From Tubulanus polymorphus (taxonomy: Eukaryota; Animalia; Nemertea): a stretch of 64,000 bases of DNA. This document shows positions 1 to 61,836 of the stretch, piece by piece (the first letter of the stretch is position 1; each line of letters begins with the position of its first letter). The position numbers and the translations under genes are program-made. The notes under the pieces are model-generated. The model was not told the origin of the DNA, searched no databases, and saw only the letters and a list, made by a program, of their open reading frames with translations. Location: assembly GCF_964204645.1 (NCBI RefSeq), contig NC_134031.1, positions 10,354,001 to 10,418,000 of the forward strand, given 5' to 3'.

Positions 1-964
1 AGCTACAACTTTGCTGCAATTGATCATGGTAACAAAATATGCCTAGGTACCACTATAATAAGGAAATACTAAGTTATTCGACTATTCAATGCCCCCTAGT
101 GACCATATGGAATAACAAATGTACTTGAAACTCACCACAATCATAGACCGTGTCATGAGCTACAACTTTCCAATTGATTGTGGTAACAAAATATGCATAG
201 GTACGAATATAATATAGAAATACTAAGTTATTGTATTGTTCAACGCCCCCTGATGGTCATATACAAAAACCAATGACCTTGAAACTCACCACGGTCATAG
301 ACCATGTGATGAGCTACATTTTTTCAATTGATTGTGGAAACAAAATATGCTTAAGTATCAATATAATGAGGGAAAACTTTTTTCCACCTACGAATGAGTA
401 CTGATGACACCAAAATGGCCGCCAATTGCATCATAATTGCCTGATCAAATATACCTGTTTCGGGTATAAGAGATCCCTTTCAAAGAATACCAATCACAAA
501 TTGCAATGAAAAATGGCAAACCATTAGGAAGCTACAGGACTCACAATTCAGGCAAAATTGACATTTTTGGGCATAAAAAAGGTCACAAGACAACCATCTT
601 GAGTCCGATCGACCCAATTTTTCTCATGCTCATGGGCCATTGGGGGATAAAAGTAAATACAAACGATCAAGGTAATTGATAAGAGCGTCATCAAAATTTC
701 CCTCAAAAACTTCGAATATGTGTAAAAAAAGTGCTGATTTTGGCGAACAACAATGCTGCCAGTCGGCCATCTTGAATCTGACAGGGCCAGTTTTTGGGCT
801 GAAGATGTGTCTAGGGTAGATACATGTTTAAACTAAATATCAGGACATCACCTTGAAACGTCTTCAAAACTTGCCAAAATAACTGGATTCCATCTACGGA
901 CGGACTGACGACGGATGGAAAGTGAACACAATAGCCCGCTTGGACTAAAGTCCCAAGTGGGCTA
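1..964 (+). mobile_element. HINE family A copy (non-autonomous Helentron/DINE-1-like), 5' end outside window
   Basis: 154-bp tandem units, (GGAC)n-like microsatellite, 3' palindrome tagcccgcttggact-aa-agtcccaagtgggcta. Confidence 0.8.
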
Positions 965-2789
965 AAAAGAGGTATTATTGTTTATGAGTTTTAGCCAGTA
1001 TTTTATAGCTCTTAGCTGAAAATGAAAATAAGGGGGGAATCTCCCCAAATCACCATATATACATCCTATAGGTGTACTTTCCTTTACCTTTAATATATCT
1101 CGACATAAGTCTAAGTGTATCTTCTCGATAAAAGGTATTTCCTTTGTACCCCATACCTCATACTCATAACTTAAGATGGGCACTACTAGTGAGTCAAAAA
1201 GATACATAATAGTTTCTATTTTTAGATATCTAAAATTGTCAGTGTATTGTTTTACCACAAACAGTGCACGCTTTGCTTTATTAATTATATATTCATGTTG
1301 TCTCCCAGTTTTACCGTTACCTCGCATGATATAGCCCAAATAGTTGTGCTGGGTCACTACTTCTATTTCTTTTCCATAGGGCCGGATAAATTCCAGTATT
1401 GAGTATTATGTTGAAAATTTTGGTGAAATGTGGAGTCAGGATATCAATTCCATTCAACAAAAATTCAGAGATAACATCATCATCACATCCCAGAGATTTT
1501 CCTTATTTTATACCTAGATCAACCTCTTCCTTTGTAATTGGAAATTCTGTTTCCGTGACAACAACATTGACATTATTCTCAACAAGTTATTAATTGTTTG
1601 CGTTAATTCTGAGGCAGGAAAATCTGGGTTATATAAACTTTGAAAATAATCTCTGAACTCATCTGTTGCAATGGAATTATTTACGCCTGGTTTTCTATTA
1701 ATCCTTTTTAACTGTTTCCATTATCACTCCTTAAATTTGATATTTCTATAGATTTCCTCCTGTTGGCACTGAGACGCTTGATTCTAAGTAATTTTTTATA
1801 TTCCCCCTTTTATTAACATACTAATACCTATTAATTTCTGATGGCAATAGTCTATAAGTTTCATAAATATTACTAAATTCTCTTCGCATTTCAACACACT
1901 CACTATCAAACCAAGCATTGGCTGCTGGTTTTACATCATAGGTGTCCCTTACAATAAATGTTTTACGAAATAGTGGATTAGTTATGTGAGTTAGGGCTGA
2001 TGTCTAATTGGATACAGCCTCATTCACATCCTCTTTGCTTTGCTTTGAACTTACTTAATTACTCACTATATCTTGGAGTGCTGTATCTGCAATATGCAGA
2101 GCGTTCCTATAGTCATTTAATTTATGCTCATCCCACTTTATTGAAGATATTCTTTTAGCTGGAGTTCTACCATTATCTTTGCAGTTCATTTGGATTGAGG
2201 CATGAATTAGAGTGGTCAGAAAATGCCGTTGGGCATGACACATCAAATACACTTTAAACTTTCAGTGCCTGTTCATTAACATTAATATAGTCGACTACAC
2301 TTTTGCCATTAGCATTTAAGCAGGTTACCCTACCGCGCCCTCTATCATCGAATGCTCTACCGTTCATAATACAAAGTCCACTTAACTGGCAAAGTTCAAT
2401 AAGCTTGCGACCATACGAGTTGGCCTTTTTATCTTCAGACACTCTTTGCTTAACTATACTATGATAATCGAATAATATATCTGTGTTTTTATATTGATAT
2501 ATTCAACAAGGTCTGTCTCAATTTGTACTACATCCTCACATAGGTCTTTTGTTCTACTGTTCAAATCTCCCCAGTTCCACACTAGTGCATTAGGGTCACT
2601 ACTGTAGATCTCAGCCATATTATTTTCCAGCACCCTGAACATATCTATATCATCGACGTTGCGCCTAGATGTGCCTTCGGGCATAATATAAACATTGCAT
2701 ATATACATATCAGCTTTAAGTAGAACAAGAGATCCACAGATCTTTATATCCCGGGCGCAATAAGTCAAATGAAAAAATTGAGCGACCAT
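962..2789 (-). mobile_element. Degenerate non-LTR retrotransposon (L2/CR1-group) ORF2: AP-endonuclease plus RT with the catalytic core deleted
   Basis: GDLNSRT, NSYGRKLIELCQLSGLCIMNGR, SVVDYI (endonuclease); LFDSLVVPILSY.YEVWG, IYGDLGRFP (post-RT region); stops and frameshifts. Confidence 0.88.
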
Positions 2790-8879: not shown

Positions 8880-9345
8880 CACTTCTTCGAGTTGTGACAT
8901 TGAACTTTGACCTACACTACTCAAAATTGAATCAGTTAGACCTACTTATAGTCACAAGATTAATTCATTAATTATTTTACATAGTAATCGTAAACAATCA
9001 TCAATGAATTAGAGCCCGGAAATGAAAATTCCAAAACAACTTCTGGTGACCTTGACCTTTGACCTACAGGACCCAACATCTAATCAGTTATCTATTTGCT
9101 CTAGGACAATCCATCCAATTAATTTCACCAAGTTATCTTAAACCATTTATGAGTTATAGCCCAGAAATGAAAATAGCAAAATAACTTCTGGTGACCTTGA
9201 CCTTAGACCTACAGGACCCGATATCTTAGCAGTCACTGAAGGTCTCTAGGGTAACCCATCCATAAAACTTCGGCAAGTTATCTTAAATCGTTCATGAGTT
9301 ATGGCCCGGAAATTAAAAATACAAAACAGGTCCTGGTAACTTAAA
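8880..9345 (+). repeat. ~150-bp tandem array with TGACCTTGACCT motif (HINE-type)
   Basis: Repeated aacttctggtgaccttgacct..gacctacaggaccc units. Confidence 0.7.
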
Positions 9346-9639: not shown

Positions 9640-12600
9640 CTGGAAAAAAATGATATGCTACAATACATCCATTTGACCCTGCATGTGCTTGGTTAATGCT
9701 CAACTAAGACACTTAGCCCATAATATCTTAACAAATTACACAACAAATGAAAAGAAAAGTATCAAAAGGTCTACAGAGCTCGTATCAACACAGCAGTCCG
9801 TAGAATGATATAGGTCCACTGTGTTTACTATTCTTCAATTATCTAATTGCCCATTGCTAAAGGTTCCCTGAGAAGAATAATTAACAAATCATAGAAATAT
9901 GAGTTTGGTAGAGCAACCCAAGCTGTCGAATCCAAAAAACAAGGGGTCTATATATCATTGAAGTCTTTCACCCAGATAGAACATCAAGAGAAAATGTAGA
10001 AGATATCCAGCCAGATCTTTAGACACCAAGCCTTATATTGATCCGATAACTAGCGAACCAGGGACACCATACCCACTTGGAAAGGGCTTCAAATGCTTAA
10101 CAATCTAACAATTTCAATATTCAAAGCCACCTGGTGACCATATGGAAAATCAATGAATTCCGGGTTTTTTTTTTCTTATGTCACACACGCGAACAAGCTG
10201 ATGGGGCAATGCTGGGAGGTTCGGGGTCCTCCCCCAAGAAAATCTTAGAAATTAAAAGCGTTTTCCGAGCACTTAGAGCGATCTTGAACCCATGAACGAC
10301 TATTATATTTTGGAAGGAAATGGCTATTTCCAATGTGGCACATCCCCATAACAATCAGCATCTCATGCATTACGGGTAGAGCTCTGAATTATTGCAGTTG
10401 AAATGCGCCGATAAATGCTCACTAAAAATCATCACAGTGTATATAATATCTGAAGGCATTCGGCCCAACAGTAGTAATAGGACTACTACTGTTGCCGCGC
10501 ACGTGTCTGCAACCGATCGATAAAATACAGAGATATCGTAGTAGATACAAAATCAGTGTTGCAATGCAATACGCAACGATAAGTAAAACAGGCGCTGAAC
10601 GCTTTCACAGTTCACCCGATTACCAAACGCGCTGGACCAGTAGAGTGAGAGCATCATCACCCCCCTATACTTTTACATCATTTTTGGACTATTTGGAAAA
10701 ATGTCATTTTTCAATACCGAAATCCGCGGAGAATTCCCATCTCTGGATAAACCAAGCTGCACCATCTAGGCCTACACCAAGTACAGAATATAGGAGTTAT
10801 TTATGAGATATAAAAAATTATGAGATATATATACAATCCAGAGAACAAATAACAAATAATCAAAGGGGAATGAAGGGGAATCAAAATTCTAACAACGTTG
10901 TAAACCTAAACAATGGTTTTTCACCCCATAATAAACTTATATCTAAATTCCACTGTAAACTGGTTAAACTCAACACTTGATTCCCCTTTGATTATTTGTT
11001 ATTTGTTCTCTCATCTATGTAAGTCTCTCAACTTGAATTCACCATTGTTTTAATTTAAGTGTCTTTTTACTACTGATTTCAAGTTCTTATTTATATTTAT
11101 ACTCACTATTGCTGTTTATAATTACCCCTTAGTTTGCTTCCCTTTAATCTATTTTAGCGTGTAACTGTTTCTAGGTTAATTTTCCTTTAGTTTGTATCAT
11201 CTCTGATTACTTGAATTAGTCTCTTTGTCTCTGGATTGTATATATATCTCATAATTTTTGTAGTTTCTCATTATTCCTCAAGATGACTATTAGGATATAG
11301 TCGAAACGTTGAAATAAACTACTATCTCGAAGTTTCATTTTCGGACTTTTTCGTTATAATTGTGGGATTCTCTCTACATTAAAGATTCCTTTCCATAGAA
11401 TAACCACCACAAATTTCAATGCCCCCGGCCTGAAATTCACCGCCACGTGAAGTTACAGGGTTTGTGGTAAATGCGTTAAAAATATCATGGCCACAATTAT
11501 TTCTTTAAGAATGATATTAGAGAACATGTGTACAAAGTGTAAAAAAATTGATCAACAGTTACAGCCTCTAGGCAGTTTTCTCCTGATGGCCAAAATTTGA
11601 AGCAGTCAGCAATTGCGGCCTCTAGGCCGTCAACATTGTTTTTCATGTCGGCCCCCTGGTAGCCATAATTTAAATCGAATCGACCCAATTTTAAATAGGG
11701 TTTTGGCCCAAGTGATACCCAACTTGTGTGCCAAGTTTGAAATAAATCGGTCAACATTTGCGGCCTCCAGGCTATAAATGTCATTTTTCATGTCGGCACC
11801 GAGGTGGCAATTATTCAAATCGACCCAATTTTACGTAAATAGGACTCGGAGCCAAGTGATACCCTACTTGTGTACCAAGTTTGAAAACAATTGGTCAACA
11901 ATTGCGGCCTCTAGGCTGTTAACGTCACTTGCGGCGGCGATGCGGCGTATTCAGATGGGGGTAAATCTATATGCCCCCTCTCAACTTGAGCCAGGGGCAT
12001 AAAAATGACAAACCATTAGGAAGCTACAGGACTCACAATTCGGGCCAAATTGACATTTTTGGGCACAAAAAAGGCCATAGGACCGCCATCTTGAGTCCGA
12101 TCGACCTAATTTTACAAATGCAGATGGACGCTTGGGGGATACGAATACATAAGAAAGATCAAGATAATTGATCAAATTGTCTCAAATATTTCCCTCCAAA
12201 ATTTGAAAAATGTAAAAAAAGTGCTGATTTTGGCGAACAACGATGGCTGCCAGTTGGCCATCTTGAATCTGAAAGGGCCAAGCGTTGGGTGTGTTTAGGG
12301 TAGATACATGTATGACTCAAATATTAAGACATTACATTGAAGTTTCTTTAAAACATCCCAAAAAAACTGAATTCCGTCTACAGACAAACGGAAGGATGGA
12401 CGGACAACGGACATAGTGAACACAATAGCCAGCTGGGACTTAAGTCCCAAGTGGGCTAAATTAGGGGTCCAGGGACACCATGCCCACTTGGGAAGTGGTT
12501 TCAAATGCTCAACAATCTATTCAATATTCAACGCCCCCTGGTGACCATATACAAAAACCAATGACCTTGAAACTCACCACAATCATAGAACATGTCATAT

Positions 12601-15600
12601 GCTACGATTTTGTAATTGATTGTGATAACAAAATATGCCTCGTTACCAATTTAATATGGAAATACTAACTTATTCTACAATTCAACGCCCCCTGGTGACC
12701 ATATTCAAAACCCAACTACCTCGAAACTCGCCACAATCATAGAACATGTCATGAACTACAACTTCGCAATTGATCACGTTAACAAAATATGCCTCGGCAC
12801 CAATATAATAAGGAAATACTAAGTTATTCTACTATTCAATGCCCCCTGGTGACCATATAGAATAACTAATGTCCTTATAACAGACCACAATCATAGGCGA
12901 TGTCATGAGCTACAACTTTGCAATTGATTGTGGTAACAAAATATGCATTGGTACACATATAATATACAAATACTAAGATATTATATTATTCAACGCCCCC
13001 AGGTGGCCATATACAAAAACTAATGACCTTGAAACTCACCACAATCATAGATCACCTTATAAGCTACAACTTTCTAACTCATTGTGGTAACAAAATATGC
13101 TTAGGTATCAATATAATGTCGAAAAACTTTTTCCCACCCATGAATGAGTACCGATAACACCAAGATGGCCGCCAATTGTGTCATAATTGGCTGAACAAAA
13201 ATACCTATCTCAGGTATAAAACATCCCTTTTCAAAGAATACCCATCAGAAATCGCAATGAGAAATGGCAAACCAGCAGGAAGCTACAGGACTCAGAATTC
13301 GGGCCAAAATTGACATTTTTGGGCACTAAAAAGGTCATATGACGGCCATCTTGAGTCCGATCGACCCAATTTTTGTTATGCTCATGGGCCCTGGGGGGAT
13401 TCAAATATATACGAAAGATCAAGCTAATAAATCAAAGCGTCTTCAAAATTTCCCTCAAAAAGTTAAAGGGCCAGTTTTTGGGCTGAAGATGTGTCTACGG
13501 TAGATACATGTGTAACCCAAATATAAAGACATTACATTGAAGCGTCTTCAAAACTTCACAAAATAACTGGATTCTGTCTACGGACGGACGAAAAGTGAAT
13601 GCAATAGCCCGCTGGGACTAAAGTCCCAAGTGGGCTAAAAAGTAAGACTAGTAGCAATTCATGGAAGTTTCCAGGCCCTAGGGGACCCCCTGGGAGTCAT
13701 ATTCCAAAAAACAGCTCCATATTGCATTATGGCTTAGGCCAAAGATCATTTGTACCAAGTATCATATTGATCTGATCTGTAGCAAGTCACAGAATTAAGG
13801 TCCCCAGGCTCTACCCCCAAGGCCCCTGGGGGTCAAATCCGAAAAATGGCACTATATTGTTTCACGCCTTGGCTCAAGTTTTATCTTAATCCAACAAAAA
13901 AAGAGGACTAGTAGCAATTCATACTAGGGTCCAGGGACACCATGCTTACTTGGGAAGTGGTTTCAAATGCTCAACAATCTAACAATTTCAATATTCAATG
14001 CCCCCTGGTGACCATATACAAAAACCAATGACCTTGAAACTCATCACAATCATAGAACACGTTATAAATAACAACTTTCTAATTCAATGTGGTGACAAAA
14101 TAAGCTTACATATCAATATAATGTTGAAAAACTTTTTCCTACCTACGAATCAGTACTAATGACACCAAGATGGCCGACAATTGCGTCATTATTGGCTGAT
14201 CAAACATACCTGTCTCAGGCATAAAACATCCCTTTCCAAAGAATACCGGTCAGCAATTGCAATGAGAAATGGCAAACCATTTCTAAGGAAGCTACAGGAC
14301 TCAGAATTTGGGCCAAAATTGACATTTTTGGGCACTAAGAAGGTCATAGGACAGCCATCTTTAGTCCGATCGACCCACTTTTTGTTAAGCTGATGGGCCG
14401 TGGGGGATTCAAACATGTAAGAAAGATCGAGGTAATTGATCAAAGTGTCTTCAAAATTTCCCTCAAAAAGTTCAAAAACATGTAAAAAGTGCTGATTTTG
14501 GCGAACAACAATGGCTGCCAGTCGGCCATCTTGATTTTGACAGGGCCAGTTTTTGGGCTGGAGATGTGTCTAGGGTAGATACATGTGTAACCTAAATATC
14601 AAGACATTACCTTGAAGCGTCTTCAAAACGTCGCATAATAACTGGATTCCGTTTAAGGACGGATGGACGACGGACAAAAAGTGAACGCAACAGCCCGCTT
14701 GGACTTAAGTCCCAAGTGGGCTAAAAAGCATGGACCCAACCCTGGGGGTAAAATCCTAACAAGAAATGAAATTCTTAATATTCTTTGATGACTGTTGTAA
14801 TAAAATATGCAGCCAGAGGTACCAATATGATGTACAAATAATAGTAATTATAATTTGTTAAGCCTAAATTCCATTTAAAACAATATGCTCATCGGCTTTA
14901 CATTCAACTGATGGGAGAGAACTAACATTCTACAGACAACTAGATCAAAAATAAAGAAAGAAAATATCAAGAAAAATATTTTTTTTTTCAAATTATGAAT
15001 GGAAACGCATACCTATCTTCAGCATGAAGTTTTTGGTAGAATTTCAGAGAATCCGTGCTCCAAGTAATCAAAAAATAGTGAAAGATTTCATTGCAATGAA
15101 ACATAAGGATGTATACCTAAGAATTTACATACCCTCTTTGTCAGTTGTAAATCTCTCTTGATCATATCTGTTATAAGCTGCTTGAATTGGCCTTGGAACC
15201 TAAAAAGTAAATAACAAAATATATCTTATAGTGACCAATTGCAACAACATACGTAGATTACTTCTTCCAATGGACAGATAGGCAGATGGCCGAACGAATG
15301 GACCGACAAAAAATGACTCCAATCGGAATCCCAAGTGGGCTAAAAATAATGAGATCATTTAGGAGAACTTACAGTGATTGGTGTGACTGTGATTTGACTT
15401 GTGAGTTGACTATGCCTATGTCCCCCATCTTCTCTTGCTTTAATTGATTGTAAGATGCCAAAGACATTTCGTGCAAATAGCTGAAATATTGAAGTATAAG
15501 TAAACAATTAGTAGCCATATCTGCTAAATGATAAAAGAAAGTATGGAGATGTTTTAGCAGTGGCAGGGAATTCTTCAATTCCATACAGTCACCAAAAAGC

Positions 15601-18600
15601 CATCTTGATAGTCACATGTCCTGAAAAAGGGGTCTGGGGACACAATGCCGACTTCTTGAAATCTAACCCTGGTTTCACTTGATTTTGGTAAAACATTTAA
15701 CTACTACATCAATAAAATTCCAACTTCAGTGATCTGTGAACAAAGTTGAAAAGTTGACCTGAAATAGGAAAATTTTCCTTTTAAAGAAAACTAGAAGTTA
15801 ACACTCAAACTCCAAACATGCAGACTGCGAGTTAAATGCCATTTTTGGCTAAAAAACCTCATGGTCTGTGGAAGGCAGAAGTTCTCCGATTATCTCCTCA
15901 CCGGTTTTACTGGGTGGTTGTGGTTTTTATATTGTGGTGCCACCACCGCAAGGTGGCAGGTTTCCAGTTAAAACAAGAGGTCCATGGACCTTGAGAATAA
16001 GAAGTTCCAGTTTGGGAAAAGGAACAAGTTCCGCCTCGCCAGGCAGGATGGATCAATGTATCTAAACATATCAATTACAAATATAGCTGCAAAGCAGCGA
16101 TAACGGGTTTTCTGCACAGTCTTAGAATCCTGTTCAACGGTGGATTTTGACGAAGCATTTGATAAGGCACAACATCAGCCATTACTAAACAGGCTATTAG
16201 GAAACAGTATCAATGATAGGTCGCCCAAATGGCTCAGCAGTTATCTCTGAACGAAAACTTGTAGCTGAAATCAACGGAACGCCTCATCTTGGAATAAGTC
16301 GGTCAAACTAGTGGAGTTGCGCAAGGTAGTATCCTAAGTTGTCTTCTGTTTAATGTCCTGACAAATGGCATACACAGTAATCCAAAATATACCAGACCGA
16401 GTAAATTTCCAAATCGACCTTAACACGGTGTTCGAACAAAAAACTTCATGTTCCAACAAGAAAATCTTGTTCGAATGAAAATAATTCTGTTTGATCGAAC
16501 AATACGCTTTTTGCTTGAACCAAAAATTTTCATCATACTGACAAAAAATGTGTTCGAATAAAAAGCTATGTTATTGTTGAAATGAAAAAAAATTTGGTTG
16601 AGCGAAAACAATTGTTTTCGAACAATATTTGAATGAAAACAATTCTGTTCGATTGAACGAAATACTTAATACTTTCGGTTCGAAGAAAAAACTTTTTTCA
16701 ATATACTTGTTCGAAAGAAAGACTTAATGTTCTGACAAGAAATTTCTGTTCAAATTAAAACGATTCTGTTCAATTGAATGATTGTTCGAACGAAAAACCT
16801 TTCGTTTGGACAGAAAAAAAGTTTGTTCAACTTTGTTCTAACGATTTTTTCAAATTGGTTCAATTGTATAGAATATAATTGGTTCGAACGAAATAAATTT
16901 TGTTCCGACGAAAGAATTTTCAATCGAAAGGTCTTTTGAACGAAAAAAAAGATATTTCTGGGGCTCCGCAGTAACTTAAAGCCAGGCGTAGGTTGTTCTT
17001 GTGACACGATGCGATCCTCGCGTTGCATCGCAAGTTTCGATGTAAGTCGCTTGCAATACGATTGTGTGCGACTAGTTTCTGCCAGTCGCAAGAGCGCGTC
17101 GGTTGGTTGTGACAGTCGTGTCACGTCGCAGAAAGTAGAACACGTACGACTCCATGTGACTGGCGTTGCTGAAAGATGAGGACGCCAGTGATATGACGAC
17201 TGAGTTTCAAGTCGTCAAAACGTCACGATATGTCGACATATTCATGTCGAATTGATATATCGCGTCAAGTCGACATGAATATGTCGATATATCGTGACGT
17301 TTTGACGACATATTTCGTTTTCTCAACCATTTTCCTCGCGACAAGTCGACATATTCATGATGACTTGAAACTCAGTCGTCATATTACTGGCGTCCTCATC
17401 TTATATTTGGACATGTCTTCAAATTACGGCTTGTCCCGTGGAAAATGAGCAAATAAGCAAAATTTGTCGTGAAAACGTCACGATATGTAGACATATTCAT
17501 GTCGACTTGACACGATATATCGCGATATATCGACATAAATATGGCGACTTGTCGAGTTTGAACGCGACAACTCGAGGCCCTTTATCGCTTCCGTACTATA
17601 TCAGATTAATCGACTTCAAAATAGGCGAAAGCATAAGTCTTTATTACGTTTTTAATTGGCCTAATTATTCAAAAGCTAATAATGTGGGCGACAAAACCAA
17701 AAAAATTAATTGTCGCAGACGATAAACCCAAAATAATCAATTGTCGCGGGCGATAAAACCAAAATAATCAATTGTCGCTGGCGATAAAACCAAAATATTG
17801 AATTGTCGCGGGCGACAAAACCAAAAAAAATGAATTGTCGCGGGCGATAAAACCAAAATAATGAATTGTCGCGGGCGACAAAACCAAAATATTCAATTGT
17901 CGCGGGCAACAAAACCAAACTAATGAATTGTCGCGGGCGATAAAACCAAAAAAATGAATTGTCGCGGGGGATAAAACCAAAATCATGAATTGTCGCGGAC
18001 GACAAAACCAAAATATTCAATTGTCGCGGGCGACAAAACCAAACTAATGAATTGTCGCGGGCGATAAAACCAAAATAATGAATTGTCGCAGGCGATAAAA
18101 CCAAAATATTAAAGTGTCGCAGGCGATAAAACGGCGACAAAAAGAAAAAAAAATTGTCGCGGGCGATAAAACCAAAATAATGAATTGTCGCGGGCGACAA
18201 ATCCAAAAAATGAATTGTCGCGGGCGATAAAACCAAAATCTTGAATTGTCGCCATTGTCGCGTGCGACAAAACCAAAATAATAAATTGTCGCAGGCGATT
18301 AAACCAAAATAATGAATTGTCGCGGGCGATAAAACCAAAATAATGAATTGTCGCGGTCGATAAAACCAAAATATTGAATTGTCATGGGCGACAAAACCAA
18401 AATATTGATTTGTCGCGGGTGACAAAACCAAATTAATGAATTGTCGCAGGCGATAAAACCAAAATAATGAATTGTCGCGGGCGATAAAACCAAAATAATG
18501 AATTGTCGCGGGCGACAAAACCAAAATTATTGTTTTGTCGCGTTATTTTAGTTTTGTCGTTTTGTCATAATGTCGCCCTCATTTGCATATACGTGTTTTT

Positions 18601-21600: not shown

Positions 21601-24600
21601 CATCCCCCAACCCCATGCAAGTCTTCAACAACTGTCACAATAACTTGCCCCGTCCCATATTGAAATGACAGAAATACTGACAAAAACTCACCTAAGCAGG
21701 AATCCCGAAGCAGAGATTGAGAACAATGAATCTGAAAAAAATGGAAATATTTTATTCATTTTATTCATGGTTACAAAGGCCCATACGCAGCTAAGAGCAG
21801 ATCATCTCCAAGGCGAAATAAGTTGACATTTGAATTTGATAATTAATAATCATTAGAAGGGCACACAAATGCGGTTGAAAACAAATCACTTGCAACTATG
21901 AATTATTTGGATACTTTGATATCAATGCAATGTAGCTCTGTTAATCATTAGCCTAGGTAAATGACGGTCCGTCGCTAGAAATCGACAGAAAACACCAGCT
22001 AACATCACAGTTGTTTAACCCTTTCAATACCACAGAGTGTCTCCGCTGATGTACAGGAGCGAATTTAGGGGTTTATAGGGGTATATTTGAGGCTTCATAG
22101 AATAGTTACCAAGGTATCTGACACAGAAAAATCATATAGCATGTTGTTGATTGTTTTGGGCCAACAAAGTAGACATAATTTGGATATAAGTGAACTTGAG
22201 GTCAAGGTCACATACTCCAAGATGGCTGCCATGAAAAAAATTCACAAAAAAGTTTCAAATAAACTGCTCAGTCTCCCAGGAAAATGCACTGATTTATTCA
22301 ATTTCAACTGAAATTGTATGCCATATATCCTTACTTTATGTAGTAAATATTTCAAAGCAATAGAACAACTCAAAAGTTTATTTTTCCACTCATTTACCCA
22401 CTTTTGCACTATATGTCGGAAGGCTGGACATAAGGGGTTTCATTGGGGTATAATTGCAGGCCTCAGAAAATTGTTACCTATGTATTTGACACTGATATAT
22501 TATATACCATGGTGTTGATAACCTTTGGGCTAACTAATTAGAAAAATAATTTGGATATATGTCACCTTAAGGATGGACAGTTTCTGGTTCTTCATTATTG
22601 TTATTGGTGTCCATTGCCATGACAACCGGATCAACAGGGTCTAAAAAATTGTCACTGATTTTATTTTCATCATCATCATCAAAATCATTGCTGGCACTAA
22701 ACCAATTTTCTGACTAAGTCTCATCATCTTACATGCACTCTCATATTCGTTGTCACTCAATTTGTTCACTACCAAATTCCAAGTCACCAGCATCACTGTC
22801 AGCATCATATACGAGCTGCTGAACCATTTAATCCAGCCAAATTGTTTTTTCCTGGCTGCTGCCATCTTGGATTTTATGCAGATAGCAGCACCAGCTGATA
22901 CTGATAGATATGCCCTTCTAGAAGAAGGGTTAAGCGATACTGTATCACATACGGTACGGGTATGCTAGCTTGCCAATTTGTACCGTATGCCATACGGTAG
23001 TGGTATTGTAAATGTTAAAGGGGAACTGCAGTCAAAAATTTATAATTGGCCATTCATTTCTACTCTCGTTGTTGTTTCGCATAACGCTAGTTGAAATGTC
23101 CAATACTTCTTAATTAACTCGTGTACAACGATTTTAATACTGTTATCAGCAGAATTTATGGCAGATGAGAGCCGCCATATTCAAATTCCAAAGTGAGGCA
23201 TGTAAACATTGATGAAGTATCCCGGCCCCTCACACACTCCAGTGTGTACACAAATAGATATATTCATTGAAGATCTCAGTTGAAAGTTACAATTAAAATA
23301 CTCCTGCTGGGCTGCCAGTGGGGTCTACTTTTGTTTATCCACTCACTGTGTGAAACACATCCAAATAATTGCTGATGTGGCATTATGCTGCAGTCTAGAA
23401 CTGTTATTGGACTTGAAAGTGATGAAAACGCTATGAATAGTAGCAGTAACACTTAGAGAGAAAAGCGTCTGCTACATGAAGAAAATGGCGGGAGCCAGGC
23501 ACTCCGCAAGTATTAGATGAAATGTTTTTTCTGCTGTTGTGAAAATGTATTTGTAAAGGTTTCTAACACATATAGATACAAAAAAATTGTCACTGCAGTT
23601 CCCCTTTAATTTGTTTTTCTCTTGAATTTTGCATGCTTAAGATATCAACGGAATATATCAAAGTCAGAATTCCATCAACATAGGAACCAGCATTGCCATA
23701 CTTAACTGGGTTTTTACACTACTTTAGATCATTCTATCATATTCAGCTAACAAGGAGCCTATCGGCTTATATAGCTCTGCTGTTTGATTCGAAGAAATAG
23801 AAGCTGCATACCTAGGGGTGCCCCCTTTTGGCCGAAAAAGGGCTCCGTACTTTGTGGGTATTGGTCCATAGAACATTCATACCAAATTTGGACTTGATCT
23901 GATTCAAACTGTAGGACTAATAGCAATTCAAAAAAATAGAAACTCCACCCCAGGTGGACGAATGAAAAAATGGCTCTGTAACTTTATAGGCCTTGGTCCA
24001 TAGAACATTCAAACCAAATTTGGAATTGATCTGATTAAAACTGTAGGACAAGTAGCGATTTGAAGATATAGAAACTCCACCCCAGGGGTGCCTTCAGGTG
24101 GACGAATAAAAAAATGGCTCTGTACCTTTATAGGCCTTGGTCCATAGAACATTCATACTAAAATCAATCTGATTAAAACTGTAGGACTAGTAGCGATTCG
24201 AAGAAAAAGATACTCCACCCCCAGGAGTGCCCCCTGGGGGAGGAATATAAAAATGGCACTGTAACTTTATAGTCCTTAGTCCATAGAACATTCATTTCCA
24301 AATTTGTAATTGATCTGATTAAAACAGTAGCACTAGTAGCGATTTGAAGAAATAGAAACTCCACCCCCAGGGGCGCCTCCTTGGGGACAAACCCAAACAA
24401 GAGTCCAAAGGGGCACTATGGCCAGCCTATCAGCTTTTCCTAAAATGGCAAATGATGCATTCTGTGGCTTATATTTGTCCAAATACACTCCCAGCTCATA
24501 GACTAGCCAATCACAAGCTAATTATTTACACAATTCAATTGTGTTTTCAGCAGTAGCACAGACAGCGACTGGAGCTGACAGGAACAAATACCTCAGATAA

Positions 24601-27600
24601 ATCTTTTCCCTTGGTCTTATTGATTTGAATGCTAATAGAATTGGATTTTCTGAAATTTGCTCAAAAAAATTGAATTGGATTGCTGCTTTACCTTGTTCAA
24701 TAAATAAAAATCGAATTGGATTTGATTTTTTTTTTTCAGAATAAAATTTGATTGAAATTGCAGTTTGAGCACATGGCTAATTGGCATATCAAGGAATTCC
24801 ATCTGATTTGAGAAAAAAGCTATTTTTCCCGGACTTTGCACAATTGTCAATGATATTTTCTGTAGTGCAAATAAAAATATTCCTCCCAAAACCCAAATCA
24901 ACTAAAGATAACGATATTGAAATACAATTTTAGATCTTAAAATAAAACCCAGAAGTAAAACGGTAGACGATACCGGGGGTTCACGTGAACACCTGCTGAT
25001 CTCTGCGGCTAAGCCAATCATAGAGGAGTCTTTGCTTTCTGATTGGCTTTTCAAAACACATATTTTTGCAATCAGAATTTCGTGAAAAAGCTCATATAAA
25101 TTTTAACGAGGTGTAGCCCTCTTTTAGAATTCAGCTTCATAATGATTTGTATGAATATATGCTCAGTTGCACAGTCAAAGAGCCTTTACTGTGGAAACCA
25201 TGTCATTTAAATTCACTCCATTTGTATAGTTATAGGCTCAGCCTAAGGCTGGCCTAAAACTGGCTCTGTAACTTTATAGGCCTTGGTCCATAAAACATTA
25301 AAACCAAATTTGGAATCGATTTAATTAAAACTGTAGGACTAGTAGCGATTTGAAGAAAAAATTGACAGATGCACGAACGAATCAACAAACTGACGACGGC
25401 TCCGCATAACCCATTAGCTCCGCTGACCTTCGGTCACAGCAGAGATAAAAAGAAACTTCACTTACCCAAGACGTCAAAATGGCGTGTATCCCTTGCGCAA
25501 TTTCTTGTTCAGCTAAACTGGTTGTTTGGGGAATACCCGAACTGCTAAGGGTATTCCCTAAACAACCAATCAGAGCGAAGCTTTCTCACAATAACGTCTA
25601 AGGCGCGATTATGTTATATTTGTCAAAATGCACTCCCTACTCATTACAATTTCAGCTGTACAATAGTATTTTCTTTAGCAGCACAGACAGGGAGCTGGCA
25701 GGAACAAATATCTCAGATAAATCTTTGCCATTGGTCTTACTGACTGCAGAATGGCATAGAATTTCATGAGAATTTGATAATATAAAATTGAATTTGATGC
25801 TTTATTTGTTCAAGAAAGTAAAATTGAAATAGATTTGATTTTTTTTGCAGAGTAAAATTTGATTGAATTTAACATTTTCAGCACGAGATCATCCATCCGA
25901 CTTGAGAAAAAGCTATTTTTACTGGACTTTGCATAATTTTCAATGATATTTTCTGTAGTGCTAATTAAAAGATTTCTCCCAAAAACTAAATCAACTAAAG
26001 ATTTCACAGAAATCTTGAAAATATAGCTGCAAAGCAGCGATAACGGGTTTTCTTGACAGCCTTGTTCGTATTCTTGTCTGGATACTGTGTCTACCACGAT
26101 CGCATGTATGCAGATGCAGCCGCATCATGCTATTGAAAATGAAGGGAATTAAGAATCCCATTCAACGGTCAACACAGTTTTATAAGAAAAAGGTATTCAA
26201 ACAGCTAATTAGGCCTGCTTGAAACCATGGATGACTGGACCAGTTGGTTATAAGACTCTGGAAAACTGACTCTTAAGCCTTAATTGGTCTTTATGGATTT
26301 TGAAAAAGCATTTGATAAGGTACTACATCAGCAATTACTACACAAGCAATTAGGAAATTCAAACACTATGATATTCAAACACTATGATATCTATAAATCG
26401 GAGGTTCATAATTTTATGTTATTCTATTCAGAAGAGGCCGTTCCCCATTCATTACTGCCAATGTCAATGCGGACATATCACTACGCGATTGCTTAACCCC
26501 CTCTCATCCACAAGATAAATAACGAGAACTAGGGGTCCAGGGACACCATGCTGACTTGGGAAGTGGTTTCAAATGCTCAACAATCTAACAATTTCAATAT
26601 TCAACGCCCCATCCAATGACCTTGAAAAAATCCAATGCCCTTGATACTCACCACATTCAAAGCAATGTCATAAGCTACAACTTTCCAATTGATTGTGGTA
26701 ACAAAATATACATAGGTACTAATATAATATAGAAATACTAAGTTATTGCATTCAATGCCCCCTGGTGGCCATATACAAAAACCAATGGCCTTAAAACTCA
26801 CCATGATCATAGAGCATGTCATGAGCTACAACTTTCCAATTGATTGTGGTAGCAAAATACACATACCGTATTTTCCGGCCAATAAGCTGATTTTCTAGCC
26901 TCAGATTTTTACCCAAAATATCGTGATCGGCTTATTGGGCGGATACGATCTGACATAAAAAATCACTTCCCGATCTATGCCACTCTAATGCTCTCAATGA
27001 TCGCCAAAATCAAGAAAAGTGGTCGATATTTCTTTGAGGTCATTATTTACTACCAATTATAATCTATTTTGAACTATTTTATTTTTACTTTGATTGTTCC
27101 ATCACCGCACAGCGGCAATGGTATACATTTATATAACGCGCGAGTTCATCGTACTACCACGTGTCAGTTCATACATTAGTATATATGCAAATCTGCAGTG
27201 AGCCGCGAACTGCGTGTATGGCTGTGTGTATAGTAATCAGCTGAGTGAGTCTATATATAGCACTGTCACTCGGCGATGATAGTATACACAGCACTCTCAC
27301 ACATCGGCGGGCGCTACTGTCAGCCTCTTAAATCATCAATTAAGACGAACTAATTGACAAATCAGTGAATTAAAATCTCTGATGAAGGGCCTCGGCTTAT
27401 TGGGCGAAGCTTTATGAAATCCATGTATTTTAGGCTAAAAAACTGCCCTTGGCTTATTGGCCGAGTCGGCTTATTGGCCGGAAAATACGGTAGGTACGAA
27501 TATAATAAAGAAATACTAAGTTATTCTACTATTCAACGCCCCCTGGTGACCATATAGCATAAATAATGTCCTTAAAACTCACCAGAATCATAGACCATGT

Positions 27601-30600
27601 CATGAGCTACAACTTTCCAATAGATTGTGGTAACAAAATATGCTTAAGTATCGATATAATGTGGAAAAACTTTTTTCCACCTACAAATGAGTACTGATGA
27701 CACCAAGATGGCCGCCAATTGGTCATAATTGCCTGATCAAAAATGCCTGTCTCAGGTATAAAAGATCCCTTTCCAAGGAATACCCATAAGCAATTGCAAT
27801 GAAAAATGGCAAACCATTAGGAAGCTGAAGCTACAGGACGCAGAATCCAGGCCAAAATTGATATTTTTGGGCACAAAACAGGTCACAGGACAGCCATCTT
27901 GAGTCTGATCGACCCAATTTTTCTCATGCTGATGGGCCCTTGGGGGGTACAAATATATACAAAATATCAGGGTAATTGATAAAACTCTTCAAAATTACCC
28001 TCGAAAACTTCAAAAATGTGTAAAAGTGCTAATTTTGGCTAAAAACAATGGCTGCCAGTCGGCCATCTTGAATCTGACAGGGCCAGTTTTTGGGCTGAAT
28101 ATGTGCCTAGGGTAGATATATGCATTAACCAAATATCAAGACATTACCTTGAAGCGTCTTCAAAACTTCCCAAAATAACTGGATTCCGTCTACTGACGGA
28201 CGGACGGACGGACGATGGACGAAAAGTGAACACAATAGCCCGCTAGGACTTAAGTCCCAAGTGGGCTAAAAATGCGATGGAATAACTTTTTGGGCCATTA
28301 AATCAGAAATCTGGCGACGCTATCTTGTAGGGAATAATTGAATTATTTTGAGTCATTTTCAGCTGTGTCTAATGTTTTACGAGAACGGAGTTACAATTTG
28401 AAGTTACTATGAAAATGAGAAGAGTCGAATATTTTTTTTCGACTAGGACTTTCGGTCCATTTTACTAGCATTCGCATTACGTCACATACATCAACCAATG
28501 CAAACAAGAGCCCCAAGGGGCACAATGGCCAGCCTGTCAGATTTGCTTTTTATAAATGATGTAATCTGTGGGTTATATTTATCAATATACACTCCCTGCT
28601 CAATATCATTTACATAGTAAAATCGTGTGTTAACACAGACAGCAGGAACGAATGTAATATAGAAATACTAAGTTATTGTATTGTTCAACGCCCCCTGGTG
28701 GCCATTAAAAAAACCAATGAGCTTGAAACTCACCTCGATCATAGAACATGTCATGAGCTACAACTTTCCAATTGATTATAGTAGCAAAATATGCTTAAGT
28801 ATCAATTATGATGTGGAAAAACTTTTTTTCCACCTACGAATGAGTACTGATGACCCCAAGATGGCTGCCAAGTGCGTCATAATTGCCTGGTCAAAAATAC
28901 CCTCTCGGATATAAAAGATCCCTTTCCAAAGAATACCAATTACAAATTGCAATGAAACATGGCGCACCATTAGAAAGCTACAGTACTCAGAATTCAGGCC
29001 AAAATTGACATTTTTGGGAACAAAAAAGCTCACAGTACGGCCATCTTGAGTCCGATCGACTCAATTTTTCTCATGCCGATGGGCCCTCGGGGGATACAAA
29101 TATATTCGAATGATCAAGGTTATTGATAAAAGTGTCTTCAAAATTTCCCTCGAACACTTCAAAAATGTGTAAAAAGTGCTGATTTTGGCGAACAACAATG
29201 GCTGCCAGTCGGCCATCTTGAATCTGACAGGGCCAGTTTTTGGCCTGAAGATGTGTCTAGGGTAGATACACGTATAAAACAAATATCAAGACATTACCTT
29301 GAAGCGTCTTCAAAACTTTGGAACTCTCACGAACTATCTAGATGGTTATCTCTCGACCTCAATAGCTTCAAGACCCATCTCAAAACAACTTTGTTCCATG
29401 CAGCATACCATTAACTCTCGGAAAGCGAATTGTATTTAACATTTTTTTGCAGAATAAAATTTGATTGAATTTGCAATTCGGGCACATGGCTAATTAGCAT
29501 ATCAAGGTCATACACCCGATTTGGTAAAACCTTTTTTTCGCGAACCTTGCGCAATTGTCAAGGATGAATTTTCTGTAGAGCAAATAAAAATTCCTCCCAA
29601 ACACCAAATCAACTAAAGATTTCATAGAAATCGATCTTGAAATACAATTTTAAATCTTAAAATAAAACCCGGAAGTAAAACAGTAGACGATACCGCGGAT
29701 TCACGTGAACACCTGATTTCTGTAAACGAAATGTTGGTTGTGACAAAATTGTTCAGACGGTTCTAGGTGGTAATAAGTACGGAAACGTAACGACCATGGT
29801 CGACTTATTCGATGAAATCAGGCCTATGTGATATCCAAATTTTGACTTTTTTATTCTCCAGACCTCCCTGATATAGAAATAAAAAAGTTTGGTGGTACGA
29901 AAGTGCAATCACAGCGCCGACGGGGACAGAGCCGATTCAGAGATCGGCGGAGTGAAAATTGAGGTGGACGAACACGAAGAAGTAGGCTATTGCGCTACTT
30001 GAATCACGAAAACTCCTGGCGCGGCCCCGACGCTTTTCGTTGATTAAGTAATACAAATATCATGCAATGGGTTTTCACAATCTACCGCTGGTATTTACCG
30101 GATTTCAATATCACTCCAAAATTCAAAGAAACCTCGAAATATCGAACCGGAACACTTCCGGTAGATATCCGCGGCTGCCCAACCGGGAAACTTATTTGTT
30201 TCAATAGATATTGATAGGATCCATCATCTTCACCCGTCAAGGGATTCGAACCCACTAAGCTAAAGCCATGCCAGAATCGGGTCGGGCCAATCACAGCGCT
30301 TGTTACAAACCACATTAGGCTTCTGTGGAATTTCCCAGTAAATGGGCCAATCAGCGAACACGTAGCGAACGCGGAAGTATTGTCGCGTGTTGATACATGA
30401 CGTCATGCGCAAAAGCGCCAGTAATGAAATCGCGATAATTCACGTGAACAGCTGCTGATATTTTCAGATAAACCAATCACAGGGAAGACACAACTTCCTG
30501 ATTGGCTGATAAAAATTGAAATTTTCCCGATTTAACTTTCGTGAAAAATGCAGAAAACATTTTTATGAGACCCTATTTCAAAATTCTGCTCGCTACGATT

Positions 30601-57580: not shown

Positions 57581-58536
57581 ACATCTTCATCACAGCTTTT
57601 AAAACTCTCTTGTAATCTTTCTTTCTCTTCCCAGACATTAATACGAATACAAGAGGGATCTGTTTGGTGTATTCCCCAGATCTGACAAATGAATGAATGC
57701 TAAAAAGCTGGGTAAATGGCCGTCTGACGACTTTGAATGTTGCATCCATGTACCAACGTTTGGTGCCCTTCACAATATCGACCTGCTTCTGTGTTGCAAA
57801 TATGAGGTGTCTCCTGTCATCTGAAAAAAGTATATTATATATGATGAAAGCAGTAGAAAATACTCTGACTTGCTTGATTTTTTGAAAGCCGATTGTGTTT
57901 ATTTTTCAATATTAAAGTTTGTTTGTTTCAGTTATTTACTCAAATTAATGATTGAGCGAGAATGCTAATAGATCGATACTTACCGACCGAAATAACTTTT
58001 CTGAAAAACCTGTTGGCAATGAAATCAGTTCCCAACTGAAAATGCAAGTCATTCGGGTGATCAGGTCGCTGGCCTTGTTGCGCTCTGTTGCCCTGTCTCG
58101 CCAAATTATCGGGAGCTGGTACAGAATCAATGGCCATGTTTTCGTCGGTGACCTGTTCACGCATCACCTGCTCTACGATTGTCGCAGCTGAGCGAAAGAC
58201 CTTTTCTTTCGCCCGTTTTTTCACTTCTGTGCTAATCCTAGCAGCTACTGCGACACCGGCACCTAAAAGAACAAAAGTTAATTCTTCAAAGATCATTTCA
58301 ATTACAATTAGGGTCAGAAAACTGCATTCATTTGTGTTTTCCATAGCGTTTCAAAAACTTTCACTTTCTGTGTGCCGCCCTCAAAATATCAAACTGATTC
58401 GATAAATCTAATGAACTACCTGGAGGATGATTGTGCTCCGAAAGTCTTGAGTATTCCGTGGCATTCTGTATCAAAGATGCTTTGCAATTTATGAGCTTAT
58501 TTCTTACAGAGCACCTCCAATGAACTGTTGAATTAA

Positions 58537-59319: not shown

Positions 59320-60941
59320 AACTAGGGGACAAGGGACACCATGTCCACTAAGGAAGTGGTTTCAAATGCTCAACAATCTTACAATTTCAATATTCAACGC
59401 TCCCCATATACAACTAACAATTAATCAAAGTGTCTTCAAAATTTCCCTAAAAAAATTCAAAAACATATAAAAAGTGCTGATTTTGGCAAACAACAATGGC
59501 TGCCAGTCGGCCATCTTGATTCTGACAGGGCCAGTTTTTGGGCTGAAGATGTGTCAAGGGTAGATACATGTTTAACCCAAATATCAAGACATTACATTGA
59601 AGCGTCTTCAAAACTTCCCAAAATAACTGGATTCGGTCTACGGACGGACTGATGTACGGACGAAAAATGAACGCAAATAAAAAACTAGGGGTCCAGGGAC
59701 ACCATGCCCACTTGGGAAGTGCTTTCAAATGCTCAACAATCTAACAATTTCAATATTCAACGCCCTCTGGTGACCATATACAAAAACCAATGACCTTGAA
59801 ACTCAATACAATCATAAAACATGTCAGCAGCTACGATTTTGTAATTGATTGTGATAACAAAAAATGCCTCGTTACTAATTTAATATGGAAATACTAAGTT
59901 AATCTACTATTCAACGCCCCCTGGTGACCATATTCAAAACCCAATAACCTTGTAACTCACCATATTCATAGAACATGTCATGAACTACAACTTTGCAATT
60001 GATCATGGTAACAAAATATGCCTAGGTACCAATATAATAAGGAAATACCAGGTTATACTACTATTCAACGCCCCCTGGTGACAATATAGAATAACTAATT
60101 TCCTTAAAACTCACCACAATCATAGATGATGTCATGAGCTACAACTTTGCAATTGATTGCGGTAACAAAATATGTATTGGTACAAATATAATATAGAAAT
60201 ACTAAGATATTGTATTATTCAACGCCCCCTGGTGGCCATATACAAAAAACAATGAACTTGAAACTCACCCCAATCATAGAACACGTTATGCGCTACAACT
60301 TTCTAATTCATTGTTGTAACAAAATATGCTTAGGTAACAATATAATGTCGAAAAACTTTTTCCCACCTACGAATGAGTACTAATGACACCAAGATGGCCA
60401 CCAATTGCGTCATAATTGGTGGATCAAAAATACCTATCTCAGGTATAAAACATCCCTTTACAAAGAATACCCAACACAAATTGCAATGAGAAATGGCAAA
60501 CCAGTAGGAAGCTACAGGACCTAGAATTCTGGCCAAAATTGACATTTTTGGGCACTAAAAAGGTCATAGGACGGCCATCTTGAGTCAGATGGACCCAATT
60601 TTTCTTATGCTGATGGGCCCTTGGTAGATTCAAATATATTCGAAAGATCAAGGTAATTGATCATATCGTCTTCAAAATTTCCCTCGTAAACTTCGAAAAT
60701 GTGTAAAAAGTGCTGATTTTGGCGAACAACAATGGCTGCCAGTCGGCCATCTTGATTCTGATAGGGCCAGTTTTTGGGCTGAAGATGTGTCTAGGGTAGA
60801 TACATGTATAAACCAAATATCAAGACATTACCTTGAAGCGTCTTCAAAACTTACCAAAATAACTGGATTCTGTCTACGGACGGACGGACGGACGAAAAGT
60901 GAACGCAATAGCCCGCTGGGACTAAAGTCCCAAGTGGGCTA
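59320..60941 (+). mobile_element. Head-to-tail HINE family A pair: internally deleted copy (59320-59682) and full copy (59683-60941), inside a MULE intron
   Basis: Two 5' termini; units at 59758, 59912, 60066, 60220; 3' palindrome at 60909-60941. Confidence 0.85.
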
Positions 60942-61836
60942 ATAAATAAAAATTGAAATACTAATCTTTTTTCAACGTTATATAGATGAAACAATTTATG
61001 AGTAATTTTGACAAAATACCTTCGTGTATGTAATTTCTTCCTCGTCTTCGACCTCTCTGGGTACAGGGTCACTGATCGAAGATTCATCAAAATCCATTGG
61101 CTCTTCAACCTCTATTGGTACAGGGTCCATGATTGAAGATTCATCGAAATCCATCGGTTCTAATATCGATGGTTCTCGGACTAGTGGAAAGGCATCATCA
61201 GTTGACAAGCAAAGGCTCGCCCTCTCTGTGCAGCTCCAGTCCCCAACGATAACTGTGTACTTTTTGGCTGGGGTATCGCTGGTAAGGTCCCCTGTAGACG
61301 ACAAGGAATGCACTTCCACGGAATGTCCTTGCCACTTTTCACTGCTTCCCTGTCTTCAGACATTGTATTTAATGATCAAAGACATCAAGAGTAAGAAATG
61401 ATCCAAACTAAACCAAAATCTAAATCCATCAGGACAAAAATGACACTTTTCGTTTGTTGCCAGTCATAGAATTACGTGGAAATACCAAGAACACAAAATA
61501 ATGACGGCCGAGTGATCAATTACACAAATCGTGAATCCATACGGCCGAAAATAATACTGTTCTTCCTTATGGCAAGTGATTTATTGTTACAGATAAAGAA
61601 AATACATTAGAGAGCAAATAAATAAGAAGGATGGGAACGTTAACGATCTTTTTGTTCCTTGAATAGGAGTACCAGTATCAGTACCAATAAACTTTTTAAA
61701 ATGTTCCATCCCACCATGAGGTTTAACAAAAAGTTTAGACGAGAAGATACACAATACCCGTGTATGATGATAACGAGAGAAATCCCACAATAATGAAGCC
61801 CAGATTGAAAAATTCCATATCAGAATGATTATATTT

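Follow-up and report, generated by a model that had tools for sequence, protein, structure and literature searches.

A dispersed HINE family of Tubulanus polymorphus carrying a CTCF-consensus word in each monomer of its central array

A stretch of 64,000 nucleotides of the nemertean Tubulanus polymorphus (NCBI RefSeq assembly GCF_964204645.1, contig NC_134031.1, positions 10,354,001 to 10,418,000 of the forward strand; hereafter called the window) contains several copies of a repeat, family A, whose structure, distribution and short sequence words were analyzed. Family A is a high-copy, non-coding family of HINEs (non-autonomous Helentrons) with a central satellite-like array, in which each monomer harbors one word matching the CTCF consensus, and with YY1-like words in the non-array half. 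About four fifths (79%) of the exact CTCF-type cores of the genome are supplied by this single family. The data somewhat favor the interpretation that the words were kept, along with other boxes, in the source copies of the element and that they decay almost neutrally once a copy has been inserted, which makes the arrays cargo of the transposon rather than insulators selected by the host.

By self-comparison of the window, approximately 13 pieces of family A were detected, all in the same orientation. Thirty copies taken from the whole 268-Mb genome aligned sharply from AACTAGGGG to GGGCTAAAAA and possessed unrelated flanks, and 29 genomic copies yielded a consensus of 1,262 bp. The element itself runs on the minus strand of the window. 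Read on this strand, its parts are, in order, a T-run at the terminus, a subterminal inverted repeat (subTIR) forming a hairpin with its complement, a short (GTCC)n microsatellite (consensus positions 1201-1213), approximately 560 bp of unique sequence, four central repeats of 154 bp, the partner subTIR and a second T-run. At the 5′ end, TTTTT is followed by AGCCCACTTGGGAC...GTCCCAGCGGGCT, whose hairpin fold is given in Table 1, and the most conserved 15-mer of the whole element is located in this region. At the opposite end, the complementary 3′ subTIR TCCCAAGTGGGC is about 22-34 nt away from the terminus. The four monomers of the consensus array are 75-88% identical to each other. Within the part of the window from 12 to 14.7 kb, no open reading frame (ORF) of at least 110 amino acids was present.

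The number of element ends in the genome, determined by a pattern count, was 1,670 compared to 0 in the control. In raw reads of another sample, the element was covered at about 100 times the depth of its flanks at an identity of at least 97%, and 1,251 reads with diverse, A-rich loose ends broke off at the same two boundaries as the genomic alignment. The letters bordering the element were also uniform: 28 of 29 copies have A at position -1, and 15 of 16 have AA at +1 and +2. Comparison of a nested copy (L025) with an uninterrupted monomer revealed no target duplication. When reads were aligned to a young copy (L012), no empty-site allele was found among the junctions listed. Of the sequencing runs listed as containing the stretch, none is recorded as RNA or labeled as ChIP or ATAC, and most have no library description. 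The genome contains 58 matches to the Rep domain Helitron_like_N, in frames of up to 2,009 amino acids. Since the pair of subTIRs, the 5′ hairpin, the (GTCC)n stretch, the central repeats, the flanking A/T-runs and the lack of a target duplication match the features described for HINEs (PMC4067079, PMC7492417), the repeat was assigned to this group. The original prediction, made from the letters of the window, had already proposed a Helentron-type element, and the ends, subTIRs, hairpin, microsatellite, central repeats and T-rich insertion sites agree with it. Only the 3′ palindrome is weak, consisting of short stems (CCACTT/AAGTGG and GTCC/GGAC) whose fold does not differ from that of shuffled sequence (z = 0.00).

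To score the word of the monomers, a vertebrate CTCF matrix of 19 columns was used, which resembles JASPAR MA0139, reaches a maximum of 33.1 bits and serves as a lead, not as a standard. The 19-mer TGGTCACCAGGGGGCGTTG (TGGTCACC...) obtained 22.1 bits with this matrix and the consensus of monomer 4, TGGCCACCAGGGGGCGTTG (TGGCCACC...), 27.5 of 33.1 bits, corresponding to p values of about 3e-8 or below. Thus, the proposed match to the CTCF core is borne out by scores of 22.1-27.5 bits, where weak scores would have spoken against it, with the proviso that the matrix is a vertebrate one. The word fits the core consensus CCASYAGRKGGCRSY or its position matrix, is found in all four consensus monomers and is of CTCF type by sequence. 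In 264 kb of contiguous sequence, 65 matrix hits of at least 12 bits were counted compared to 4.5 expected. Genome-wide, the exact core CACCAGGGGGCG occurs 4,686 times, the reversed control 4 times. In 3,682 of these cores (79%), TTGAA comes next, which is the context of the family A monomer. The remaining cores, about 1,000 compared to 4 in the control, lie outside the monomer context and suggest that the genome uses a CTCF-type word independently of the element. The origin of CTCF has been placed in the bilaterian ancestor (PMC10658181), and bilaterian CTCF proteins share a core motif, although loop anchoring is not established in invertebrates (preprint 10.64898/2026.10.19.760054). Four different CTCF-type words of 14-22 bits, all on the plus strand, are also present in a duplicated unit of about 1.8 kb located 23.5-26.5 kb before the window (G000:C7, approximately 10,327,480-10,330,470; L048), which is unrelated to the 154-bp arrays.

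The YY1-type words, to which the original prediction had also pointed, are located in the half of the element that lacks the array. Three copies of CAAGATGGCCG in both orientations reside in this non-array half of the consensus. This word agrees with the YY1 pattern AAGATGGCGGC, which includes the core GCCAT, at 10 of 11 positions, the exception being a C instead of G behind GGC. In the genome, the word was counted 5,249 times compared to 28 times in the control, mostly within family A. The canonical word CAAGATGGCGG, on the other hand, was found 651 times compared to 33 in the control (20-fold), dispersed singly, as would be expected of a host motif. In the local copies, the YY1-type word differed at 2.0% of positions and its 30-nt neighbors at 9.3%. 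Separation of changes shared between copies from those private to one copy gave 0.6% versus 5.8% for shared changes (p=1e-6) and 1.4% versus 3.5% for private ones (p=0.036). Two genome-wide searches were evaluated by eye for the 100 matches listed first; here, the core decayed at about 2.1% per site, much like the adjacent block with about 2.3%. The YY1-type words are interpreted as another box conserved at the level of the element lineage, which could be a YY1-type site or a site for the transposition machinery.

All motif positions named in the original prediction were recovered by pattern search (its position 88 corresponds to 87), and the spacing within arrays is exactly 154. With up to two mismatches, the 19-mer CAACGCCCCCTGGTGRCCA gave 15 matches in the window (87, 241, 10122, 12529, 12683, 12837, 12991, 13996, 26753, 27534, 28686, 59758, 59912, 60066 and 60220), all on the plus strand, compared to 0.00 expected from 100 shuffles. 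Tandem Repeats Finder (TRF) detected arrays of period 154 at 12518-13128 (4.0 copies, 80% matches), 59754-60357 (3.9 copies) and 1-367 (2.4 copies). For the YY1-type word, searched as CAAGATGGCSG, 14 matches compared to 0.05 expected were obtained, each within a copy of the same element as the CTCF-type words. The features of the focal copy and of its relatives are compiled in Table 1.

Table 1. Family A copies, their words and sister repeats in the window
Feature	Position	Strand	Evidence or remark
Focal family A HINE copy, near full length	12459..13641	-	~92% identity to consensus 1-1013 and 1080-1262 (blastn)
Head-to-tail abutment of the focal copy on the end of another copy	12457-12463	.	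sequence, end motifs
Central tandem array, 4 x 154 bp	12518..13128	.	TRF, monomer comparison
CTCF-type 19-mer TGGTCACCAGGGGGCGTTG, monomer 1	12529..12547	-	22.1 bits
CTCF-type 19-mer, monomer 2	12683..12701	-	22.1 bits
CTCF-type 19-mer, monomer 3, CpG to CpA on the motif strand	12837..12855	-	20.7 bits
CTCF-type 19-mer TGGCCACCTGGGGGCGTTG, monomer 4	12991..13009	-	22.0 bits; family consensus TGGCCACCAGGGGGCGTTG, 27.5 bits
YY1-type word CAAGATGGCCG, adjoining a palindrome with 7-bp stem (GCCAATT...AATTGGC)	13161..13171	+	pattern search, fold
YY1-type word CAAGATGGCCG	13343..13353	-	third copy of the consensus falls in a stretch deleted from the focal copy
5′ subTIR and complementary repeat, hairpin just inside the terminal T-run	13605..13637	-	fold -9.9 kcal/mol, z -3.9
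Short (GTCC)n microsatellite, as in DINE-1 and oyster HINEs	13580..13590	-	sequence; compared with PMC7492417
3′ subTIR TCCCAAGTGGGC, complementary to the 5′ one	12482..12493	-	sequence
Second full-length family A copy; array 59754-60357; motifs 59758, 59912, 60066, 60220	59684..60949	-	TRF, pattern, blastn
Family A copy beginning ~300 bases before the window; array 1-367; decayed motifs 87, 241	1..966	-	TRF, pattern, blastn
One-monomer family A copy (motif 13996)	13923..14728	-	pattern, blastn
Three partial family A copies (26528-26859, 27482-28272, 28644-29318); motifs 26753, 27534, 28686	26528..29318	-	pattern, blastn
Sister repeat C, two ~145-bp units; motif and flank align with family A monomer 4; one unit has a 14.8-bit word at 11647	11590..11930	.	
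Sister repeat B, tandem units of 132-146 bp; minus strand with four CTCF-type words (17.1-23.5 bits)	23800..24400	.	

To determine how well the CTCF-type word has been conserved, changes were divided into private ones, which are confined to one copy and arose mostly after insertion, and shared ones, which trace back to the element lineage. No other block that is invariant between the four consensus monomers is as long as the word (17 positions in a row, 21 of 22 in total). In older local copies, non-CpG differences amounted to 6.8% within the motif and to 10.9% across all array columns (p=5e-4); the corresponding values of young copies were 1.1% and 2.9%. Since misassigned monomers and subfamily differences raise the second value and thus inflate the contrast, the comparison was repeated with those columns that are invariant between the monomers, after which motif and remaining columns of the older copies were equal (6.2% each). 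Private changes were not significantly rarer in the motif than in the other invariant columns, neither in old copies (odds ratio (OR) 0.85) nor in young ones (OR 0.80). By contrast, shared changes were depleted in the motif of young copies even relative to the invariant columns (OR 0.22, p=0.002). Old copies showed such a depletion only at G/C positions (OR 0.38, p=0.013).

For the genome-wide comparison, intact blocks were determined by pattern counts on condition that the 8-nt anchors to the left and right of the block matched. Of 640 copies of monomer 2, 412 (64.4%) had an intact 19-mer, whereas the block downstream of it was intact in 400 of 724 (55.2%; p=6e-4 compared to the motif). Per site, the loss was 0.023 for the motif, 0.026 for the upstream and 0.033 for the downstream block. 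Divergence of the motif at the same rate as its flanks had been named beforehand as a result that would argue against the chromatin hypothesis. The motif indeed decays at a rate close to that of the flanks, and private changes point in the same direction, while the downstream block is less intact; the outcome thus varies with the control chosen.

The positions at which substitutions occurred were also compared with the matrix. Substitutions of old local copies avoided positions critical for the score (mean loss 2.96 versus 5.35 bits, P=0.0007), whereas in young copies their placement was unbiased (P=0.31). In the old local copies, 31 of 34 ungapped motifs retained at least 17 bits, compared to 20.6 expected from an empirical neutral model, but this excess was not relied on because the control columns include subfamily differences. 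Decay of CpG showed a trend to be lower in the motif (15% versus 26%, p=0.03). An apparent strand asymmetry of this decay (11:0 in old local copies) was discarded as it amounted to 3:3 in the first 100 genome-wide rows and is probably due to a shared subfamily variant.

Further information on the history of the word came from two sister repeats of the window. Repeats B (23800-24400) and C (11590-11930) are distant homologs of the family A monomer (alignment z 6.9 and 3.8, respectively), and the boxes CATAGAACAT and AATTGAT are common to families A and B. A convergent, independent origin of the motif in B and C was rejected because of this homology. A similar word in another family, which had been pointed out in the original prediction, corresponds to TGGCTACCAGGGGGCCGAC in repeat C (position 11647, minus strand), which reaches 14.8 bits with the matrix. 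Family B is only about 50% identical to family A, as read by eye from the alignment, yet four of its units contain words of 17.1-23.5 bits. In simulations of neutral divergence of 40-50%, a score of at least 17 bits was kept in merely 1-4% of cases. Along with the depletion of shared variants, the words of family B provide the best evidence for maintenance of the word in the lineage that propagates, where it is one of several boxes kept. A fragment of repeat B lies at 13642-13925 between two family A copies. Another tandem repeat of 145 bp (window 9004-9328, 2.2 copies) contains CAACTTCTGGTGACC, which resembles the family A word without the C-run.

The combination of a 154-bp periodicity and a uniform orientation had been interpreted as a sign of a function in chromatin. 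Neither property requires this explanation. The spacing of 154 bp is simply the length of the monomer and is in the range usual for central repeats of HINEs (oyster 165-167 bp), and within an array the same orientation follows automatically from the tandem structure. As to the orientation of different copies, the element's own strand lies on the locally T-rich strand; on the antisense strand, the 1-kb flanks have an AT skew of +0.05 (p=0.0009 and p=0.015). After masking of the copies, the skew of the window as a whole was +0.03, with positive values in all 12-kb bins; unmasked, it was positive in most 4-kb bins. Three minus-oriented copies within the 200 kb upstream of the window are situated in surroundings of zero or negative skew. 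On contig 1, neighboring copies less than 20 kb apart were concordant in 21 of 25 cases, those farther apart in about 60%. Orientation domains on the megabase scale, for which a runs test gave z = -3.3, were rejected as the signal originates from the pairs less than 20 kb apart. Thus, monomer length and strand-specific targeting of T-runs, including those at the ends of resident copies, account for both properties without any function in chromatin.

Several observations on the insertion of the element were made in passing. At 12457-12463 and 59676-59684, two family A copies are joined head-to-tail and have the terminal A/T-run in common, as expected for insertion of a new copy into the terminal T-run of one already present. 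A 31-bp satellite (window 17686-18542, 27 copies) is a recurrent landing site: 2 of the 30 loci (L005 and L014) lie inside it, and 274 reads of run X5 revealed one common junction between element and satellite. Moreover, an identical junction, CTGGTGGCCATATACAACTAGGGGTCC, in which a motif of the monomer-4 type is joined directly to a new element start, was found at 11 places of the genome and, including variants, at 15 (e.g. G000:C6:10332025, L027). It looks as if a composite element had itself been amplified. A preference of the element for inserting directly behind the motif (3 of 30 loci; 15 junctions genome-wide) was considered but dropped, since 11 of the 15 junctions are identical and roughly 8 are estimated under random targeting of A-runs. 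Among the matches listed for contig 1, which is at least 31.8 Mb long, the family A copies extend from approximately 6.3 to 24.4 Mb with one at 28.8 Mb, leaving the distal arms almost empty; the canonical YY1 word, unlike the family A copies, occurs over the full length of the contig. Many other transposons are present in the window, and weak domain matches to MULE transposase and reverse transcriptase were obtained in long minus-strand ORFs at 57156-57773 and 5044-5460. A Pfam analysis of the ORFs of at least 110 amino acids in the window yielded only weak transposon domains and no recognizable host gene or exon that would correspond to the gene in which the original prediction placed the copies, and an Rfam search of the window gave no match.

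According to the favored interpretation, the CTCF-type words would be retained in the propagating lineage, i.e. in the source copies, alongside several further boxes that are conserved. Host architectural factors binding to the words are the probable cause, as they would keep source copies accessible or shield them from silencing. After insertion, nothing would maintain the words any longer and they would decay, while the arrays would flood the genome with potential CTCF sites as cargo of the transposon. A constraint on the motif at the level of the lineage is moderately supported, and a number of findings weigh against it. The matrix is that of a vertebrate and may differ from the specificity of CTCF in this species. 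The invariant run shared by the monomers is not significant by permutation (p=0.07-0.09). The AT-rich block upstream of the motif is intact in 510 of 810 cases (63.0%) and hence is as well kept as the motif (p=0.58). In old copies, no depletion of shared variants remains if only the invariant columns are considered (OR 0.91). The avoidance of critical positions in old copies stems largely from two tolerated positions, which may be markers of subfamilies rather than independent events.

One rival explanation is a pure hitch-hiker, a CTCF-like word that arose by chance in the ancestral monomer and was amplified without any role for element or host, its conservation reflecting recent amplification and homogenization of the arrays. 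That the motif is no better kept than its AT-rich neighbor, that private changes accumulate in it at the rate of its neighbors, that the invariant run has a p value of only about 0.08 and that substitutions in young copies are random with respect to the matrix all agree with this explanation. On the other hand, control positions changed at rates of 10.8% (G) and 8.5% (C) compared to 4.5% (A) and 6.1% (T) in this genome with 34% GC, so that a G+C-rich word containing CpG should decay faster than AT-rich flanks, but it does not. That the motif stays level with the AT-rich block hints at a mild constraint, no more. In addition, a hitch-hiker does not account for the depletion of shared variants in young copies or for the persistence of strong words in the distant sister family B, and the chance occurrence of a 19-mer at a p value of about 3e-8 in the founding monomer is improbable. 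The explanation is considered unlikely.

Alternatively, the words might be cis sites of the Helentron machinery, bound by Rep or helicase or adopting single-strand structures, with a merely coincidental resemblance to CTCF and YY1 sites. That they appear to be conserved in the element lineage like CATAGAACAT and AATTGAT, the boxes shared by families A and B, would fit such a function. The same applies to the strong depletion of shared variants in the YY1-type words and to the arrangement of these words, three of which, in both orientations, occupy the subterminal half beside small palindromes, as repeats bound by transposases often do. However, the approximately 1,000 exact CTCF cores outside the monomers and the 20-fold excess of the canonical YY1 word as single occurrences make it appear that host factors with these specificities exist. 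The number of central repeats varies between copies, which would be unusual for sites essential for transposition, and a coincidental match of 27.5 bits is not to be expected. For these reasons, a role restricted to transposition is rather improbable. Still less probable is a set of insulators or loop anchors selected by the host, many inserted arrays having been co-opted to shape domains or the looping of the genes that contain them, because, despite strong matrix matches in directional arrays, the dominance of the family among perfect cores, the excess of well-preserved old motifs and the lower decay of CpG, private changes after insertion are not depleted, the genome-wide loss per site is merely 10-30% below that of the flanks, the excess of old motifs depends on controls with subfamily differences and the orientation is accounted for by the mechanics of insertion.

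The favored retention of the words in source copies can be extended by a bolder speculation: the transposon lineage might depend on architectural proteins of the host, in which case source copies would have to keep functional CTCF- and YY1-type sites in order to remain accessible or unsilenced. Through its spread, the family would have provided this spiralian genome with about four fifths of its perfect CTCF cores in the form of mini-arrays with four co-oriented sites, a subset of which might now act as directional chromatin barriers inside genes. This extension is regarded as doubtful.

Among known elements, Cg_HINE of the Pacific oyster (Vojvoda Zeljko et al. 2020, PMC7492417) is similarly built. 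It possesses a 5′ subTIR with its complement, a microsatellite of the GTCY type, a variable stretch, satellite-like central repeats of about 160 bp and a 3′ subTIR with palindrome, and it is dispersed throughout the genome. However, its CL1 monomers (165-167 bp) carry CCCCTGGGGATCAT at the G+C-rich box, and 'CACCAGGGG' occurs just twice in the supplement file, whereas each monomer studied here has a CTCF-type core. The oyster repeats thus lack a CTCF-type core and do not contain the same word. The DINE-1/HINE elements of Drosophila, mosquito and mite (Thomas et al. 2014, PMC4067079) have subTIRs, a palindromic 5′ region, central repeats or a microsatellite, T-rich insertion sites and a variable number of terminal Ts in common with family A and likewise do not duplicate their target. 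Their 3′ end is different, since the subTIR of the mite HINE is 38-60 nt away from the end and the palindrome is weak in family A. In C. elegans, tandem repeats of rolling-circle elements have also been proposed to counteract silencing: Helitron minisatellites (PATCs) are reported to have become chromatin barriers, possibly to the benefit of the element (bioRxiv 10.64898/2026.08.08.743475). According to that study, those repeats exert their effect by DNA mechanics (10-bp periodicity) and arise after insertion by mutational bias, whereas in family A a candidate word for protein binding is already part of the consensus. C. elegans has lost CTCF. The macrosatellites DXZ4 and D4Z4 (e.g. PMC6985041) are comparable insofar as they consist of co-oriented tandem units with one CTCF site each, although the sites described here are of CTCF type by sequence. 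They are confined to a single locus and have units of kilobases, whereas family A forms about 1,700 dispersed mini-arrays with units of 154 bp.

In mammals, transposons have driven expansions of CTCF sites, for example the rodent SINE B2, where the consensus of the family carries the core and a large share of the motifs in the genome belongs to it. Family A resembles these cases in that a single repeat family with the core in its consensus contributes a large share of the motif instances. It differs in that the carrier is a rolling-circle DNA element, each copy has four co-oriented sites at distances of 154 bp, the host is an invertebrate and the sites are predicted ones.

For mammals, waves of CTCF sites spread by transposons are textbook knowledge on genome evolution; for invertebrates, in which the function of CTCF is debated, such waves are little studied. 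With about 1,700 copies harboring four phased and co-oriented sites, family A provides a natural experiment on the binding of CTCF in an invertebrate, on insulation and on the question of whether element or host benefits. Furthermore, surveys counting CTCF motifs in such genomes mostly count one transposon.

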